Positions 3,869-58,655 of a stretch of DNA of 64,000 nt are shown here, piece by piece. Under the pieces are notes generated by a model. It saw only the letters and a list, made by a program, of their open reading frames with translations, was not told where the DNA came from and did not search any database. The translations under genes were made by a program, and so were the position numbers. The DNA lies in the sequence record NC_010821.1, one strand, 5' to 3'. Each line of letters starts with the position of its first letter. The first letter of the stretch is position 1.

Positions 3869-4188
3869 TGGAACAAGGTATCATAAACCGCATTCGCCAA
3901 TTGGCAGAAGATCTGGATATCGCTGAAACGTATCCAAAGCACATCAACATCACCTTTGATGAAGCTAACGATTACGCAGTCAAGGTACTCAATGCTAAAT
4001 TGAATGGGGTCCCAATGGCAGTGGTCTTGGTCAGTGTTGAATACGACCAAGGGTTGTTGAATTGCCTACGTGGGATTATGGAACAGCGCTTTGGGATGGG
4101 TGAACACATCCTCGACATCAAGGTTCCTAAAACACTCGATCGGATTATCATCAAGTTCGATCAACCTTATTCGTTACTGGAGGCTTAA
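3865..4188 (+). CDS. hypothetical protein
   Basis: 107-aa ORF, ATGA overlap with the upstream gene. Confidence 0.7.
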   Translation: MMEQGIINRIRQLAEDLDIAETYPKHINITFDEANDYAVKVLNAKLNGVPMAVVLVSVEYDQGLLNCLRGIMEQRFGMGEHILDIKVPKTLDRIIIKFDQPYSLLEA

Positions 4189-4407
4189 ATGGATAGTCGT
4201 GCACAGATCATCGGCGCTCGGTATTCGCCATCAGTGAGAGGTTACATACTGGAAGCTATGGAATTAGAAAGGATCGTCAGTGACTTACATTGGTCGCAGA
4301 TGGGCGCTAATGATTGTAAGAATGATCATGGTGAACGAACCAACCATAAACTGAAAGATCAACCGTTCTATGCACGGGGTCGTAACGGTAAAATGCGCAA
4401 TTGGTAA
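4189..4407 (+). CDS. hypothetical protein
   Basis: 72-aa ORF, GGAGG SD upstream. Confidence 0.6.
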   Translation: MDSRAQIIGARYSPSVRGYILEAMELERIVSDLHWSQMGANDCKNDHGERTNHKLKDQPFYARGRNGKMRNW

Positions 4408-4435
4408 CACTTTAATCTATTAAGAGGAAACAAAG

Positions 4436-5842
4436 ATGTCGGCAGTTAAATATAGTGCAGTAGTTGAAAACACCCGTAAACTGGTGCGTGTAGTAAAGGT
4501 AGATGCAATTACCCCAATCAAGAAAGCTGACTTTATCGAGCTGGCCAAAATCGATGGTTGGCAATGTGTAGTAAAGAAAGACGAGTTCAAAGCAGGTGAT
4601 CTGGCAGTGTATGCTGAGATCGATTCCCTGTTACCACTCGACAATCCACTGTTCGCCTTCCTTGGTGAGCGTTCGGATGGTAAGCGGACATTTGATGGCG
4701 TAGCGTACTCTCGTATCCGCACCGCTAAGATGCGTGGTGAAGTATCACAAGGTTTGTTGCTACCACTACCAGAACAATTCAAGGGTAAGAAGGTCGGTAC
4801 TAACCTGACCAACGAACTCGGTGTTCGTAAACTGGAAGCTGAGATCGCTAACGTTGATGGCTTTGATGGTCGTCTTAACAAGGATGGTCCGATTAGTCTG
4901 TGGGAACGTCTGGCGCGTTTTGTAGCAGGTCCACCTGCCGAAGCAATGCATCTTCCTTTCCCTGCTCAGATCTCTAAATCAGATCAAGAGCGTGTTCAGA
5001 ATATCGGTAACCAATATGCCGAAGCAGCGGCGTCCGGCGAGACGTTCGAGGAAACGGTTAAGGTCGATGGTCAATCCATGACAGTTTATAGCTTCCGCGA
5101 TATGGATGAGGCTGGTCCTATTCGCCGCTACGGCGTTTGTTCGCGTAACTTCGACATGCGTATGACTGATGTTGTATTCACCCCTGTACAGGCTTTCCGT
5201 CGCTTTGTAGCACAGAACATGCTTGCCTTAAGTGGTGGGTTCAGTGGTTTGTTCCGTACGGCTCAATTCCTGACTAAACAGGTTATGGATAAAAAGCTGG
5301 ATGCCGACTACGCCATTAAAGAGTACTTCACTAAGCGGTACTTCTGGTTCTCTCCATTTAAAATGTGCATCGCCGCAATGGATGATAACTGCGTCAATTA
5401 TGTTATCACCAACAAAGTACTGGATAAACTGGCAGCTTACAACGTACTGCACGATGACTGCATTACTGTACAGGGTGAGTTGTTCGGTCCAGGTATCCAG
5501 AAGAACTATGAACGTCCTGCTGAGAAACGTTTCGCAGTGTATCAGGTGTATCGTAATGGTAGCGAATGGGTTAAACCGATCGAAGCTCGCGCTATTACCG
5601 AAAGCATCGGCTTGGAATACGTTAAAGTACTGAATGGTTCCACTACGCTACCTAAGTCGGTTAAGGAAGTTCTGACCCGTGCTAAAGGTAAGGGTGCCTA
5701 TGCAGCTTTTGACCCATCGATCAATGCCGTACCTGACATCAACCGTGAAGGTATTGTATTTAAATCAAACACTCGTGATTTCAGCTTTAAGGTAATCTCG
5801 ACTGAATATCTTCTTGAAGCCGAAGCAGCTATGGAAGAATAA
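4436..5842 (+). CDS. RNA ligase, Rnl2/DRB0094 family, with N-terminal OB-fold (tRNA-binding-like) domain
   Basis: N-terminal AD.IELA.IDGWQCVVKK...EIDS; ligase motifs KVDG (I, Lys209), QGELFGPGIQKN (III), FAVYQV (IIIa), REGIVFK (IV), SFKVIS (V). Confidence 0.9.
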   Translation: MSAVKYSAVVENTRKLVRVVKVDAITPIKKADFIELAKIDGWQCVVKKDEFKAGDLAVYAEIDSLLPLDNPLFAFLGERSDGKRTFDGVAYSRIRTAKMRGEVSQGLLLPLPEQFKGKKVGTNLTNELGVRKLEAEIANVDGFDGRLNKDGPISLWERLARFVAGPPAEAMHLPFPAQISKSDQERVQNIGNQYAEAAASGETFEETVKVDGQSMTVYSFRDMDEAGPIRRYGVCSRNFDMRMTDVVFTPVQAFRRFVAQNMLALSGGFSGLFRTAQFLTKQVMDKKLDADYAIKEYFTKRYFWFSPFKMCIAAMDDNCVNYVITNKVLDKLAAYNVLHDDCITVQGELFGPGIQKNYERPAEKRFAVYQVYRNGSEWVKPIEARAITESIGLEYVKVLNGSTTLPKSVKEVLTRAKGKGAYAAFDPSINAVPDINREGIVFKSNTRDFSFKVISTEYLLEAEAAMEE

Positions 5843-7030: not shown

Positions 7031-7094
7031 CCAGAGTTATTTAATCATACGCTAGCCCCTCATTCCGAGGGGCGCGTCATGATAGGTAACTGTA

Positions 7095-7355
7095 ATGTCA
7101 TACGACAAAGTGTCTCGCCGTGTTAACCGTGTAGAATCCGCCCGAGTGATCCGTAACCAAACTACGGTCTATCTGCTTTACAACGAGTCGAAGTGGCTCA
7201 AGACGCAGAAACCTCATAGCTTCGCCAAAGGTAAGGCTATGAACTGTAGTTGCGGTACGTGCCGTGGTTGGGGACGAGTAGCACGTCAAGATCGTTTTAA
7301 CCTCCAGTTGGAGAAATCAGGAATGACTAAATATGACGTACGTCCAGACATCTGA
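7095..7355 (+). CDS. small basic Cys-containing phage protein
   Basis: PHSFAKGKAMNCSCGTCRG motif, possibly Zn-binding. Confidence 0.65.
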   Translation: MSYDKVSRRVNRVESARVIRNQTTVYLLYNESKWLKTQKPHSFAKGKAMNCSCGTCRGWGRVARQDRFNLQLEKSGMTKYDVRPDI

Positions 7356-7367
7356 AGAGGAATGGGT

Positions 7368-7433
7368 ATGAACAAAGAAACGATTATCGATGAGCGTCCA
7401 GATATCATCACTCGTGAAGAAGACTGGATCTAA
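7368..7433 (+). CDS. micro-ORF (21 aa)
   Basis: MNKETIIDERPDIITREEDWI*; GAGG SD; followed by terminator. Confidence 0.35.
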   Translation: MNKETIIDERPDIITREEDWI

Positions 7434-7438
7434 CTAAA

Positions 7439-7466
7439 AGAGTCCCTTCGGGGACTCTTTTATTCC
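7439..7466 (+). terminator. hairpin terminator
   Basis: AGAGTCCC-TTCG-GGGACTCT then TTTATTCC. Confidence 0.75.
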
Positions 7467-7486
7467 CTGTTATCAAGAGGTGCGGT

Positions 7487-33297: not shown

Positions 33298-33978
33298 ATG
33301 ACTTCTAAAATCGTAACCTTTCCAGACGTACCAATGACCATGGTCATTAAGCGTCTTACCGATTACACCGTGCAACACTATTCCGGCTTGGATGACATTC
33401 CACATCTCTGTGTGAAAGTCCGCCATCATAATGGCTTCGCGTGGTTTGGTATCAGCATCATTCCAACGGGTAATTATCCTAACGGGTTCCCTGCACCATG
33501 GCCGGCTCAGTTGGTACGTAATGTCAAGACCCAGTTCCTTCAGGCGATGGCTCAGGTTATCGATCTGGCTGAAATGGATTCTGACGTGGATCTGTTGATG
33601 CGTAGTATCCAAGACATCTGCGCCAAGCGTAAACGTCCTGTGATGTTCGGTACTGGCGGTAATGAGTTCATCCAGATCTCGTCTACCAACAACGTTCAGA
33701 TCGAGCTGTATCGCGATGAGGTGAAGCCAGAGTCGTCGACTTACGGTGGTTATTTCTTCGTGGTGGAATATGACGGTCAAACCTTTCCGGGGTTGCTGTA
33801 CCATCGTGGGATCATTGCATACAACTATATCACCAAAGAAGCCGCTCATGGTTTGATCCGTGAAGAACTCCAAGCTAAGTTCCCTGAGTTCTTCAATGAC
33901 CCATCGAAGTTGGTGATCCCTTTCGGTGAAATCATGCAGTTACCACGTAACCGTAACAAGTGGGCTAAGGTGCGATGA
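33298..33978 (+). CDS. hypothetical protein
   Basis: 226-aa ORF. Confidence 0.75.
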   Translation: MTSKIVTFPDVPMTMVIKRLTDYTVQHYSGLDDIPHLCVKVRHHNGFAWFGISIIPTGNYPNGFPAPWPAQLVRNVKTQFLQAMAQVIDLAEMDSDVDLLMRSIQDICAKRKRPVMFGTGGNEFIQISSTNNVQIELYRDEVKPESSTYGGYFFVVEYDGQTFPGLLYHRGIIAYNYITKEAAHGLIREELQAKFPEFFNDPSKLVIPFGEIMQLPRNRNKWAKVR

Positions 33979-34352
33979 AAACACAGACGCTAGTTATTGA
34001 CCTGATTCGTAACTGGCTTCCGAACGCTACCACTGGTTTGTGGGCGAAGCACTCGATGGAGGGCTTCGATATCATCACAGTTCTGACTGAACCCGAGTAC
34101 CCTGGATTGGAAAAGATTCAGGGGAAAGTCATTTGGGCAGAAGACGGTGTAATTGATGACAAGGCTAATGCTGAACGCAATCTGCTGATTCATCAGGTAG
34201 CCCGTAAGTTCGCCAAAGCCACTGAAACGGTGCTCATTGGCGTCAGGCATGTTGATCGTATTACATACCTCGACTTCAAAGGTGAGTCTATCAAAAACGT
34301 TGAAGGGTTCGACTGGGTGGATGTCGTTCTAGAAAAAGAAATCATCGTTTAG
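33975..34352 (+). CDS. hypothetical protein
   Basis: 125-aa ORF, ATGA overlap. Confidence 0.7.
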   Translation: MKTQTLVIDLIRNWLPNATTGLWAKHSMEGFDIITVLTEPEYPGLEKIQGKVIWAEDGVIDDKANAERNLLIHQVARKFAKATETVLIGVRHVDRITYLDFKGESIKNVEGFDWVDVVLEKEIIV

Positions 34353-34379
34353 TAAAAGAATACTCAGTGTGTAATATTA

Positions 34380-34855
34380 TAGGAGTGAATGCTCCTAGCC
34401 CGTGATAAAAGCCTCGTAAAAGTGTTGCTTTCATTTCCCACCCCATCACGGGTTCCCCCTATTCAGGATCACTGCTCTGGTAGTGAACCAAATGAACAAG
34501 GGTGTTCGCAGGGGTTATCTCTCTAACCAGGGTCCCCGTCACCATAAGCAGTAGGTTAGATGCCCTGCTCGAACACCCGCCTAAGCATAATGAACTTTCG
34601 GAATAATTCGCCCGTCCCCAAATAAGGTGGGATGGTTAGTTGGAGATGACCAGTCTCCTAAACCGAAGCACTGATCACTAGGGTGGTACCTATTCGATAC
34701 AGTGAAGTTACTCGATCATATCGGTGTTACACCCCCGATCGAAGTGGCGACTGACAAAGTGATACTTCCTACTAAATGGGTTGTTCAGCTGGCCAGCACA
34801 CATGCGTCAGATTAAACCTCAAGCCCCCACCCTCGTAGGTGGGGGCTTTATTCCG
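34380..34855 (+). ncRNA. candidate large structured non-coding RNA of unknown family
   Basis: ~500-nt gap with no credible ORF in an otherwise gap-free genome; at least 10 nested helices with plus-strand G:U pairs; ends in a strong terminator. Confidence 0.65.
34821..34855 (+). terminator. hairpin terminator closing the candidate ncRNA
   Basis: AAGCCCCCACC-CTCGTA-GGTGGGGGCTT-TATTCCG. Confidence 0.8.
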
Positions 34856-34870
34856 TCTCAAGGAGAAACT

Positions 34871-35068
34871 ATGAGTTTGTACGATCAGTTGTTTAAGCTG
34901 TATATTACGGTGAAAGATCCGAAGGTTGTCCGGTATCGTCGACATCCATGTCAACTGCGTATTGTCGGCAAGGCCCGGCATATGTGGGGTAACGAAAGTA
35001 AACTCGATCCCGGTTCTCAAAGCACTGAAACGATTGAAAAACTCATCGCCCGTTATTACATCGATTAA
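34871..35068 (+). CDS. hypothetical protein (65 aa)
   Basis: AAGGAG SD before ATG 34871 (the track start at 34781 runs through the terminator). Confidence 0.65.
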   Translation: MSLYDQLFKLYITVKDPKVVRYRRHPCQLRIVGKARHMWGNESKLDPGSQSTETIEKLIARYYID

Positions 35069-47588: not shown

Positions 47589-47675
47589 TGGTGCCGGTGG
47601 TGGGCCTCGATCCCACAATCCCTTACGGGCGGCGGATTTTAAGTCCGCTATCTATACCAATTCGATCACACCGGC
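47589..47675 (-). tRNA. trnL: tRNA-Leu(TAA), 87 nt, encoded CCA, atypical T loop
   Basis: GCCGGTG/CACCGGC acceptor stem, GCGGA-CTTAAAA-TCCGC anticodon arm, long variable arm, GTGGG-ATCGAGG-CCCAC, ACCA end. Confidence 0.92.
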
Positions 47676-47795
47676 GGGTAGCACTGACGAATCAGTGCGA
47701 CGGACTATACTGGTCCGTTGCAGCTCAGTTACCATGAGTAGGCTATCACGGAGTGTAATTACTCATATAGTATTACACTCCTGGTATTCTTTTAC

Positions 47796-58181: not shown

Positions 58182-58241
58182 GGTGTAGTAAAACCGTAGT
58201 GCACTGTTAGCGCAGTGCATTACACTACATATCATTGCAAT

Positions 58242-58655
58242 ATGAGTAATTCTTTTATGACCGAAATTAAACAGTTGGATCTCAGTATCCTTAAACGCGA
58301 GCAGTTCGAGAACAAGCGTAGTTACGATAACGCGGTGTGGTATCTCGAACATTTGAACGACCTCGTGATGCTCCACAACTCAGGATACATTCTGTTCTAT
58401 AAAGACCGTATCTTCATTCCTGAATTGAAGGTTAGCTATTACGCTGTCGATGATGCCCCATTTGATGGCGAAGATGGTGAATTCGAAAAGACCGGTGAGG
58501 TTAGATTTATCGGTTTCGGTCCAGCTGGGTTGATCGGTATTACTCGCTGCCTTAAGAAAGGACGTATCTACGTTTCCAAGCGCGAAGCTAAGGAATACCT
58601 CAAGGCTATCCAAGTTGTTCATAAACCCGACTTCCATAACTTTCTGGATCTGTAA
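58242..58655 (+). CDS. hypothetical protein (start uncertain)
   Basis: track 58215..58655; later ATG preferred. Confidence 0.65.
   Translation: MSNSFMTEIKQLDLSILKREQFENKRSYDNAVWYLEHLNDLVMLHNSGYILFYKDRIFIPELKVSYYAVDDAPFDGEDGEFEKTGEVRFIGFGPAGLIGITRCLKKGRIYVSKREAKEYLKAIQVVHKPDFHNFLDL

Follow-up and report, generated by a model that had tools for sequence, protein, structure and literature searches.

What does Pseudomonas phage 201phi2-1 encode in the large gap between its genes gp424 and gp425? The window examined here is a 64,000-nucleotide (nt) stretch of sequence record NC_010821.1, and BLASTN of 601 bases around the locus gives 100% identity to positions 286974-287574 of NC_010821 of this phage (NC_010821 position = window position + 252674). 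A sequence-only reading, made from the letters of the window alone, had suggested that the gap holds a large, orphan and undescribed non-coding RNA of a jumbo phage. Comparison with related phages indicates that the locus almost certainly encodes a genuine, conserved, plus-strand structured RNA of a new family, here called the P4-hairpin RNA, for which the newness lies at the level of the RNA family.

The RNA locus follows gp424 (33975-34352). The annotated start of gp425, at 34802, falls inside helix P8 and the terminator of the RNA. In Phabio and in the uncultured relatives L009 and L028, the gp425 homologues use as their start the counterpart of ATG 34871, which follows an AAGGAG, and gp425 likely starts at this ATG instead of at 34802, giving a 65-amino-acid (aa) protein. 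Because the start shared with the homologues is ATG 34871, the true non-coding gap spans 34353-34870, or 518 nt, and is the largest within the first 50 kb of the window. This agrees with the earlier suggestion that it is the largest gap without a credible open reading frame (ORF). No conserved ORF was found in it, the longest being 45 aa, and relatives differ from one another by 1-nt and other non-triplet insertions and deletions. A protein-coding gene was rejected on these grounds, given ORFs that are short, unconserved and disrupted by frameshifting changes. Two coding sequences (CDSs) labeled "hypothetical protein" are annotated over the RNA homologue in Viktualia (PV037725, L002), at 3998-4279 and 4359-4448, and both were probably called as genes in error. 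Within the first 50 kb, one other annotated gap, 7031-7486 (gp358 to gp360), approaches that at the RNA locus in size and ranks second. An 86-aa ORF with a CxxC sequence lies unannotated inside it, at 7095-7355 (plus strand), and is probably a dropped CDS rather than an RNA.

The description of the locus as an orphan proved wrong. At least 20 homologous loci are present in phiKZ-like (chimalliviral) Pseudomonas phages, including Viktualia, Phabio, phiKZ, PhiPA3, PA1C, Psa21, RVTF4 and 12 uncultured contigs. They share a single syntenic position, on the plus strand, between a conserved promoter and an intrinsic terminator, and downstream of a gp287/gp423-family gene. BLASTN of the region against 50,697 phage records detected only Viktualia, at 74.8% identity, and with relaxed E-values Phabio also appeared, matching over 68 nt in a gap that carries no annotation. 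Scanning IMG/VR and metagenomes for sequence patterns brought in L003, L009 and L017; of the 10 metagenome sequences that fit the P4 pattern, nine were coding DNA that matched by chance. Syntenic loci, located through the gp287/gp423-family protein, were searched with covariance model R1, built on the conserved hairpin, and with its rebuilt version R2. These models identified exactly one copy per locus at 19 distinct loci, with scores of 57.9-93 bits, phiKZ, PhiPA3, PA1C, Psa21 and RVTF4 among them, and every copy lies in an unannotated gap on the same strand as the flanking genes. The sole pattern match in genome_contigs, a Streptosporangiaceae metagenome-assembled genome, was matched by neither R1 nor R2. 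Family membership was defined by hairpin P4, an AUCUC internal loop with UG(C) opposite, a YNCCCGUC apical loop on a 3-5 base-pair (bp) stem and a CCUA tail. The 201phi2-1 locus scores 81.1 bits against R2 (E = 2.7e-21, 34495-34590) with all P4 motifs present, and is flanked by the promoter AATAC-N6-TGYAAT-NN-TATRKR, an intrinsic terminator and the upstream gp287/gp423-family gene.

The part of the RNA common to all members is P4, a hairpin of ~85 nt, and in 201phi2-1 it is organized as follows.

34494-34590, plus strand: universal core module, with 5' flank (A)UGAAC, P4 at 34500-34578 and 3' tail GCCUAAGC
34500-07/34571-78 (P4a), 34508-13/34563-68 (P4a') and 34522-28/34554-60 (P4b), plus strand: stems of P4
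34514-21 opposite 34561-62, plus strand: internal loop of P4, GUUAUCUC facing UG
34517-34521, plus strand: invariant unpaired AUCUC of the asymmetric internal loop, identical in 19/19 sequences
34531-33/34541-43 with loop 34534-40, plus strand: apical stem and loop of P4
34535-34540, plus strand: invariant unpaired CCCGUC of the apical loop, identical in 19/19 sequences

Across 19 sequences 96.1% of the cells in P4 pair, and 18 of the 20 pairs have changed on both sides. The covariation score of 0.656 compares with 0.205 for shuffled alignments, none of 500 being as high, and with no more than 0.12 once the partner columns are shifted by 1-3 positions, although the sequences are phylogenetically related and the shuffle tests overstate their independence. 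Viktualia lacks both T34503 and A34575, a paired deletion that removes exactly one base pair. The apical loop, 7-8 nt long, is carried on a covarying stem of 3-5 bp seen as GGU/ACC, GGC/GCC, GCG/CGC, GCU/AGC, UACC/GGUA, CACC/GGUG and ACAAG/CUUGU. Also invariant and unpaired around P4 are the UG(C) facing the internal loop, a GAAC-like 5' flank and the CCUA of the 3' tail. Between 201phi2-1 and Viktualia the core module is 92.7% identical, compared with 73-76% for the flanking genes, and other domains of the RNA are only 58-71% identical, with pairing kept. A second CCCGTC hexamer occurs at 34610-34615 in the 5' strand of helix P5a; it reads CCCATC in L003 and is different in Viktualia, and because it is not conserved it is probably coincidental. 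We considered the P4 loop as an antisense to 16S ribosomal RNA, the possible target being a conserved segment that we take to read 5'-UGACGGGGGCCC-3'. This was dropped, as the complementarity is 12 nt long in the 201phi2-1 clade and only the 6-nt CCCGUC is shared family-wide.

The sequence-only reading had nearly all of the block paired, and every helix that it listed was recovered, whether in the minimum free energy (MFE) fold, in the consensus fold or when single elements were folded by themselves.

34380-86/34391-97, 34398-406/34445-453 and 34466-475/34480-489, plus strand: recovered helices of the 5' part
34500-508/34570-578 continuing into 34509-513/34563-567, with inner stem 34522-528/34554-560, plus strand: recovered helices of P4
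34596-601/34663-668, carrying 34612-618/34629-635 and 34642-647/34653-658, plus strand: recovered helices of the first junction
34669-676/34696-704 with 34679-682/34689-692, 34707-717/34737-748 and 34751-755/34806-810, plus strand: recovered helices of P6 to P8

The plus strand folds at -166.5 kcal/mol, better than dinucleotide-shuffled controls (-144.1 +/- 6.9 for 100 shuffles; z = -3.24, none as good). However, the minus strand folds nearly as well (z = -3.08), and therefore folding energy alone cannot choose the strand. The anticipated G:U pairs mark it more clearly: P4 holds 13 G:U cells on the plus strand that would be A:C on the minus strand, and both promoter and terminator are on the plus strand, to which we assign the RNA. 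One structural proposal fared badly. A pseudoknot or switch between TCCCACC (34436-442) and GGTGGGA (34626-632) was rejected: the two segments are complementary, but in no long form of the RNA does the pairing outperform shuffles, and PhiPA3 and PA1C lack the entire 5' domain that contains the 34436-442 partner.

These observations bear on whether the locus is an RNA gene at all. A degenerate coding gene, a DNA element such as an origin or packaging site, or a remnant of an intron or mobile element might be entertained in view of the two CDSs annotated in Viktualia, the good folding of the minus strand and the occurrence of group I introns in phiKZ-like phages. We regard all of these as very improbable. 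The gap has no conserved ORF and its indels are not multiples of three, the paired loss at T34503/A34575 deletes a whole base pair, G:U pairs are a feature of the plus strand only, and the flanking promoter and terminator are on that same strand. A group I or group II intron was specifically rejected, given that gp424 ends at a conserved stop codon, an independent promoter precedes the RNA, and no intron model matches. In Viktualia and Phabio another gene separates gp424 from the RNA, and hence there are no split exons.

The limits of the transcript are defined by its flanking signals.

34355-34383, plus strand: 29-nt promoter motif AAAGAATAC-N6-TGTAAT-NN-TATAGG, also found upstream of tRNA-Leu
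34381-34852 (NC_010821 287055-287526), plus strand: predicted long-form transcript of ~470 nt, bounded by promoter and terminator
34821-34852, plus strand: intrinsic terminator, an 11-bp G+C-rich stem (34821-31/34838-48) followed by UUUAUU
34860-35068, plus strand: gp425, downstream gene outside the RNA, with ribosome-binding site (RBS) AAGGAG at 34860-65 and likely true start ATG 34871

A motif of the form aAAgAATAC-N6-TGYAAT-NN-TATRKR lies just 5' of the RNA in 19/19 members, and transcription in 201phi2-1 would start at approximately 34381-34385. The strong plus-strand terminator expected at the end of the block is present, with its stem at 34821-34848 followed by UUUAUU. Every family member ends with a G+C-rich hairpin and then UUUAU; the sequence of the terminator stem varies in each relative yet pairs, and GGCUUUAU is conserved. 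The long-form homologues align with the 201phi2-1 RNA over its full length.

The full 29-nt promoter motif has one other copy in the window, at 47764-47792 (minus strand; 2 mismatches, 0 expected by chance), immediately upstream of the transfer RNA (tRNA) gene tRNA-Leu. The tRNA-Leu gene of 201phi2-1 is transcribed from a "middle" promoter (PMC11512511). Its cassette (47589-47792, minus strand) resembles that of the P4-hairpin RNA in the promoter motif, in a leader hairpin at the start, and in a terminator ending in UUUAUUUCG that is followed by an RBS and the next gene. The two differ in their products, that of the cassette being a tRNA with no sequence or structural similarity to the P4-hairpin RNA. 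The tRNA-Leu(UAA) gene at 47589-47792 has a structured 5' leader of ~88 nt and a terminator ending in TTTATTTCG. A small RNA (sRNA) derived from a 5' untranslated region (UTR) immediately upstream of a tRNA has been mentioned (PMC11512511), and the tRNA-Leu leader may be that sRNA, because ARAGORN predicts no other tRNA in the window. The promoter motif occurs a third time at 58226-58250 (minus strand; 1 mismatch), between gp459 and gp460, where it is directed antisense into gp459. Directly after it, extending down to ~58170, is a hairpin GTGCACTG-CGCTAA-CAGTGCAC with GGTTTT, making this a candidate antisense small RNA of ~45 nt.

Could the RNA belong to a known family? Rfam 15 (4227 models) gave no match anywhere in the window at gathering thresholds. 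Relaxing the cut-off to E <= 10 over 34200-35000 yielded only chance matches below threshold, located near the terminator apart from one in coding sequence farther downstream, and on seven related loci only tRNAs were matched. The models cover transfer-messenger RNA (tmRNA), RNase P, 6S, signal recognition particle RNA, group I and II introns, hammerhead, twister, pistol, hatchet, GOLLD, ROOL, HEARO, OLE, raiA and riboswitches. ARAGORN found no tRNA or tmRNA at the RNA locus, its only prediction in the window being tRNA-Leu at 47589-47675. The sequence-only reading had seen no signature of tmRNA, RNase P, group II or hammerhead RNA, and indeed none of the 4227 models matches. The locus is absent from the phiKZ and 201phi2-1 transcriptome, Grad-seq and antisense-oligomer papers and from the jumbo-phage review that we found. 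Taken with the lack of an Rfam match, this bears out the view that the large jumbo-phage RNA is undescribed.

Members of the family come in two sizes. Short forms of ~115-140 nt, consisting of P4 and the terminator, occur in phiKZ (NC_004629 ~263172-263292, upstream of gp289), Phabio, Psa21, RVTF4 and six uncultured phages. Long forms of 375-480 nt occur in 201phi2-1, L003, Viktualia, L009, L017, L028, L048, PhiPA3 (HQ630627 ~291105-291490) and PA1C. A pattern based only on the 3' domain retrieved known members and one further long form, L048, with no false matches, and a covariance model of the 3' domain (R3) matches only the nine long forms, scoring 80.7 bits for 201phi2-1. All long-form motifs are present in 201phi2-1, namely CUUUCGG/CCGAAGC, NCCA:UGGN, GAAGUUA and CUGGCCAG. 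The contig L033 (IMGVR_UViG_3300042009_000063, ~2398-2745) has P4 followed by a different 3' extension of ~250 nt that lacks CUUUCGG, GAAGUUA and CUGGCCAG and does not match R3; it may represent a second type of long form.

Upstream of P4, the long form of 201phi2-1 carries three hairpins.

34381-34397, plus strand: P1 hairpin AGGAGU-GAAU-GCUCCU, overlapping the predicted start site
34398-34453, plus strand: P2 hairpin GCCCGUGAU ... AUCACGGGU, with variable interior
34466-34489, plus strand: P3 hairpin, in which an A:U pair is U:A in L009 and L017

Two pairs of P1 covary in Viktualia (AGGACA/UGUUCU). P2 is found in all seven long forms that have the 5' domain and shows compensatory changes (CCCGUGAU/AUCACGGG, CCCAUGAUC/GAUCAUGGG and CGCAUGAUAAAC/GUUUAUUAUGCG). 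PhiPA3 and PA1C are without P1-P3, and the three hairpins are an addition in the 201phi2-1 clade.

Downstream of P4, the 3' domain contains two three-way junctions.

34595-34669, plus strand: first three-way junction, with P5 at 34596-601/34663-68, P5a at 34612-18/34629-35 and P5b at 34642-47/34653-58
34649-34652, plus strand: P5b side of the loop-loop contact, ACCA, pairing with UGGU of the P6 loop
34669-34704, plus strand: P6 hairpin, with outer stem 34669-76/34696-704, inner stem 34679-82/34689-92 and loop GUGGUA at 34683-88
34684-34687, plus strand: P6 side of the loop-loop contact, UGGU, pairing with ACCA of the P5b loop
34704-34710, plus strand: invariant GAAGUUA at the P6-P7 junction, in 9/9 long forms, of which GUUA is also the base of P7
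34707-34748, plus strand: P7 hairpin with variable interior and base GUUACU/AGUGGC
34751-34810, plus strand: P8, the second three-way junction domain, closed by CUGAC 34751-55/GUCAG 34806-10 and holding a variable hairpin and P8b
34789-34796, plus strand: invariant 8-nt palindrome CUGGCCAG of the P8b hairpin, with a GGCC loop, in 9/9 long forms

The architecture of this domain is identical in independent folds of all long forms, each sequence having been folded alone, and elements folded in isolation give homologous helices from quite different sequences. Compensatory changes were found in nearly every helix across relatives, a check that upholds the structured RNA first proposed. P5 (UUUCGG/CCGAAG) is invariant in the long forms and closes the junction with P5a and P5b. 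P5b itself is represented by seven different helix sequences, with 5/6 pairs changed on both sides, and in the outer stem of P6 the figure is 6/7. In a model-fitted alignment of P5b and P6 together, 14/17 pairs are changed on both sides, and their covariation of 0.80 compares with 0.28 for shuffles (0/500) and at most 0.24 when slid. The base of P7 covaries (GUUAC/GUGGC, GUUAU/AUAGC, GUUAC/GUAGC). The closing helix of P8 is wholly different between clades and still paired, with CUGAC/GUCAG, CUGGUGC/GUACCAG, CCUGACA/UGUCAGG, GUUUUCCU/AGGAAAAC and UACCU..CCAGA/UCUGG..AGGUA all represented, and a stem pair flanking P8b is G:C in 201phi2-1 and A:U in PhiPA3.

A loop-loop (kissing) tertiary contact between ACCA of P5b (34649-52) and UGGU of P6 (34684-87) is supported by covariation. 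The P5b loop reads N-CCA and the P6 loop UGG-N', and N:N' is a Watson-Crick combination in 9/9 long forms: A:U six times, U:A in L017, and G:C in PhiPA3 and PA1C. These pairs were counted by script, as the MAFFT and covariance-model alignments did not align the CCA of the P5b loop in all rows.

One further question is whether the long form is catalytic or self-assembling, with the 3' domain acting as a self-processing ribozyme or the palindrome CUGGCCAG joining copies into a homo-oligomer. Formation of homo-oligomers has been reported for ROOL, GOLLD, OLE and raiA RNAs. Junctions that stay invariant (CUUUCGG/CCGAAGC and GAAGUUA) while helices covary, the conserved tertiary contact and the presence of the palindrome in 9/9 long forms count in favor of such an activity. 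Nevertheless, a cut-off as loose as E <= 10 brought no match to an Rfam ribozyme or large-RNA model, phiKZ, Phabio, Psa21 and RVTF4 do without the 3' domain, and the geometry of a GGCC loop of 4 nt is ill suited to loop-loop kissing. We consider this activity doubtful; it is compatible with the explanation of the locus that we favor below, and would refine it.

How, then, might the RNA act? The sequence-only reading had guessed at a scaffold, a ribozyme, a defense-protein sponge or a phage-nucleus-associated RNA. As the best explanation of the whole we lean, if only slightly, toward a free-standing RNA gene at 34381-34852 (plus strand) that produces a stable trans-acting RNA; that the RNA acts in trans through P4 we put at an even chance. 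The RNA would be made in the middle phase of infection as a stable RNA, like a tRNA, and would act in trans, with the invariant single-stranded nucleotides of P4 forming the contact surface. The partner of P4 could be a conserved phage or host protein, or another RNA loop, and the optional 3' and 5' domains could play an accessory part, stabilizing the RNA or providing a second binding activity. Action in trans is favored because the RNA and the phage tRNA gene share one cassette layout, and P4 is proposed as the recognition surface because the strongest constraint falls on its unpaired nucleotides. In addition, the first gene downstream of the RNA belongs to at least five unrelated families, which argues against gene-specific control in cis.

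Several observations weigh against a free-standing trans-acting RNA, in addition to the relatedness of the P4 sequences mentioned above. A same-strand gene follows every member after 4-44 nt, a layout that also fits a cis-acting leader. A search of the window for a partner hairpin with a complementary GACGGG loop returned no convincing candidate, and the neighboring proteins are without Pfam domains. Searches of these proteins against PHROGs returned only "unknown function" and a weak HslV-like match for phiKZ gp289. The gp289 family comprises proteins of ~225-246 aa with the N-terminus MTYIV.DG..., encoded 1-3 genes downstream of the RNA in most members; the PHROG match of the phiKZ gp289 (L021 13755-14483) family is to an HslV-family peptidase at E = 1.3e-5. 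None of the ORFs examined downstream of the RNA in 201phi2-1 is a member of the gp289 family.

A cis-acting 5' leader would set the passage of polymerase past the terminator into the downstream block (gp425-gp429 in 201phi2-1; gp289 and the genes following it in phiKZ), either as an attenuator responsive to a ligand or protein, or as an RNA like put of HK022 that makes the phage polymerase resistant to termination. All members examined keep to one order, namely promoter, structured RNA, terminator, RBS and a gene on the same strand, with gaps of 4-44 nt to the gene. The site is syntenic, with a gp289-family gene 1-3 genes downstream in most members, and units of 201phi2-1 with a terminator closely after the start site have been tied to regulatory RNAs (PMC11512511). 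However, the variety of first downstream genes, from at least five unrelated families, weighs against a leader. In 10 short forms the potential of the upstream RNA to pair with either half of the terminator did not exceed chance, its best complementarity being equaled in 17-189 of 200 shuffles. For most of these short forms the MFE fold contains both P4 and the terminator, and in the long forms a separately folded domain of ~240 nt intervenes between them. Furthermore, the tRNA-Leu gene, whose product is certainly trans-acting, uses the same cassette. An antiterminator of the riboswitch or attenuator kind was rejected for want of a conserved pairing that competes with the terminator in the 10 short forms. 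A generic riboswitch or attenuator, for which a single functionally coherent downstream gene is expected, was set aside in view of at least five unrelated clusters. A put-like mechanism requires no alternative pairing, so the pairing tests do not bear on it. Overall, we view a cis-acting leader as possible but less probable than the trans-acting RNA gene.

A bolder proposal, which we think unlikely, is that the RNA is the nucleic-acid component of an unrecognized ribonucleoprotein or RNA-only machine conserved across phiKZ-like nucleus-forming phages. If so, P4 would be the universal functional core and might serve as a decoy or sponge for a host RNA-binding or defense factor, or might regulate the phage polymerase or translation, with the compact 3' domain adding catalysis or self-assembly through the CUGGCCAG palindrome.

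The phages phiKZ, PhiPA3 and 201phi2-1 are the main laboratory models of nucleus-forming jumbo phages, and little of their RNA biology has been mapped: the few small RNAs reported in them have no assigned function, and none lies at the P4-hairpin RNA locus. The new family combines strong comparative support, an invariant hairpin core, a modular short and long architecture, a loop-loop tertiary contact, and a promoter type shared with a phage tRNA. It offers a concrete target in tractable phages, with a ~115-nt version in phiKZ and a ~390-nt version in PhiPA3, and also leads to annotation corrections at the start of gp425 in 201phi2-1 and at the two spurious CDSs in Viktualia.

Among RNAs described previously, the closest in setting are the promoter-proximal sRNAs of giant phages. 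In 201phi2-1, sRNA005 lies upstream of the tail gene gp277 (PMC11512511), and phiKZ small RNAs have been reported at the PHIKZ298/297 spacer, in the p40 5' UTR and upstream of gp182. Like the P4-hairpin RNA, sRNA005 and the phiKZ sRNA 5' of gp182 (PMC11512511) have a phage start followed by an intrinsic terminator just upstream of a gene, and the element is conserved among 201phi2-1, phiKZ and PhiPA3. Unlike it, they occupy another locus (gp277 is outside the window) and have unrelated sequence and fold. The sRNA screen of 201phi2-1 kept only units of less than 250 bp (PMC11512511), and the P4-hairpin RNA, at up to 470 nt and with a complex tertiary fold, is above that cut-off. The put RNA of HK022 is likewise a structured RNA right after a phage promoter and before a terminator, and could act on its own polymerase. 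It has no sequence or structural similarity to the P4-hairpin RNA and the polymerase here is a phage multisubunit enzyme, making the likeness one of analogy only.

The T-box riboswitch shares with the long forms a UGGN that pairs with NCCA, with covariation at N, and an intrinsic terminator downstream, and the 201phi2-1 string UAGGGUGGUACC (34679-34690) equals what we take to be the T-box consensus. In the P4-hairpin RNA, however, NCCA is an internal loop of the same RNA and not the 3' end of a tRNA, Stem I and the specifier loop are absent, and the hairpin loop that holds UGGN lies 130 nt before the terminator and does not overlap it. A T-box was rejected, as the 12-nt resemblance is not conserved (GACUGGUACU in Viktualia, CCUGGCUGG in PhiPA3) and the Rfam T-box model does not match even at E <= 10.

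In overall character the long forms are most like GOLLD, ROOL, HEARO, OLE and raiA, which are large structured non-coding RNAs of bacteria and phages, several hundred nucleotides in length and multi-junction, with covarying helices, invariant junction nucleotides and a tertiary contact; the P4-hairpin RNA is phage-carried. It differs from them in matching no Rfam model, in its smaller size (~375-480 nt) and different architecture, and in its distribution, so far confined to a single syntenic position in phiKZ-like Pseudomonas phages. Also unlike these RNAs, the P4-hairpin RNA is modular, in that its universal 85-nt hairpin exists alone as an RNA of ~115-140 nt as well as within the long form.

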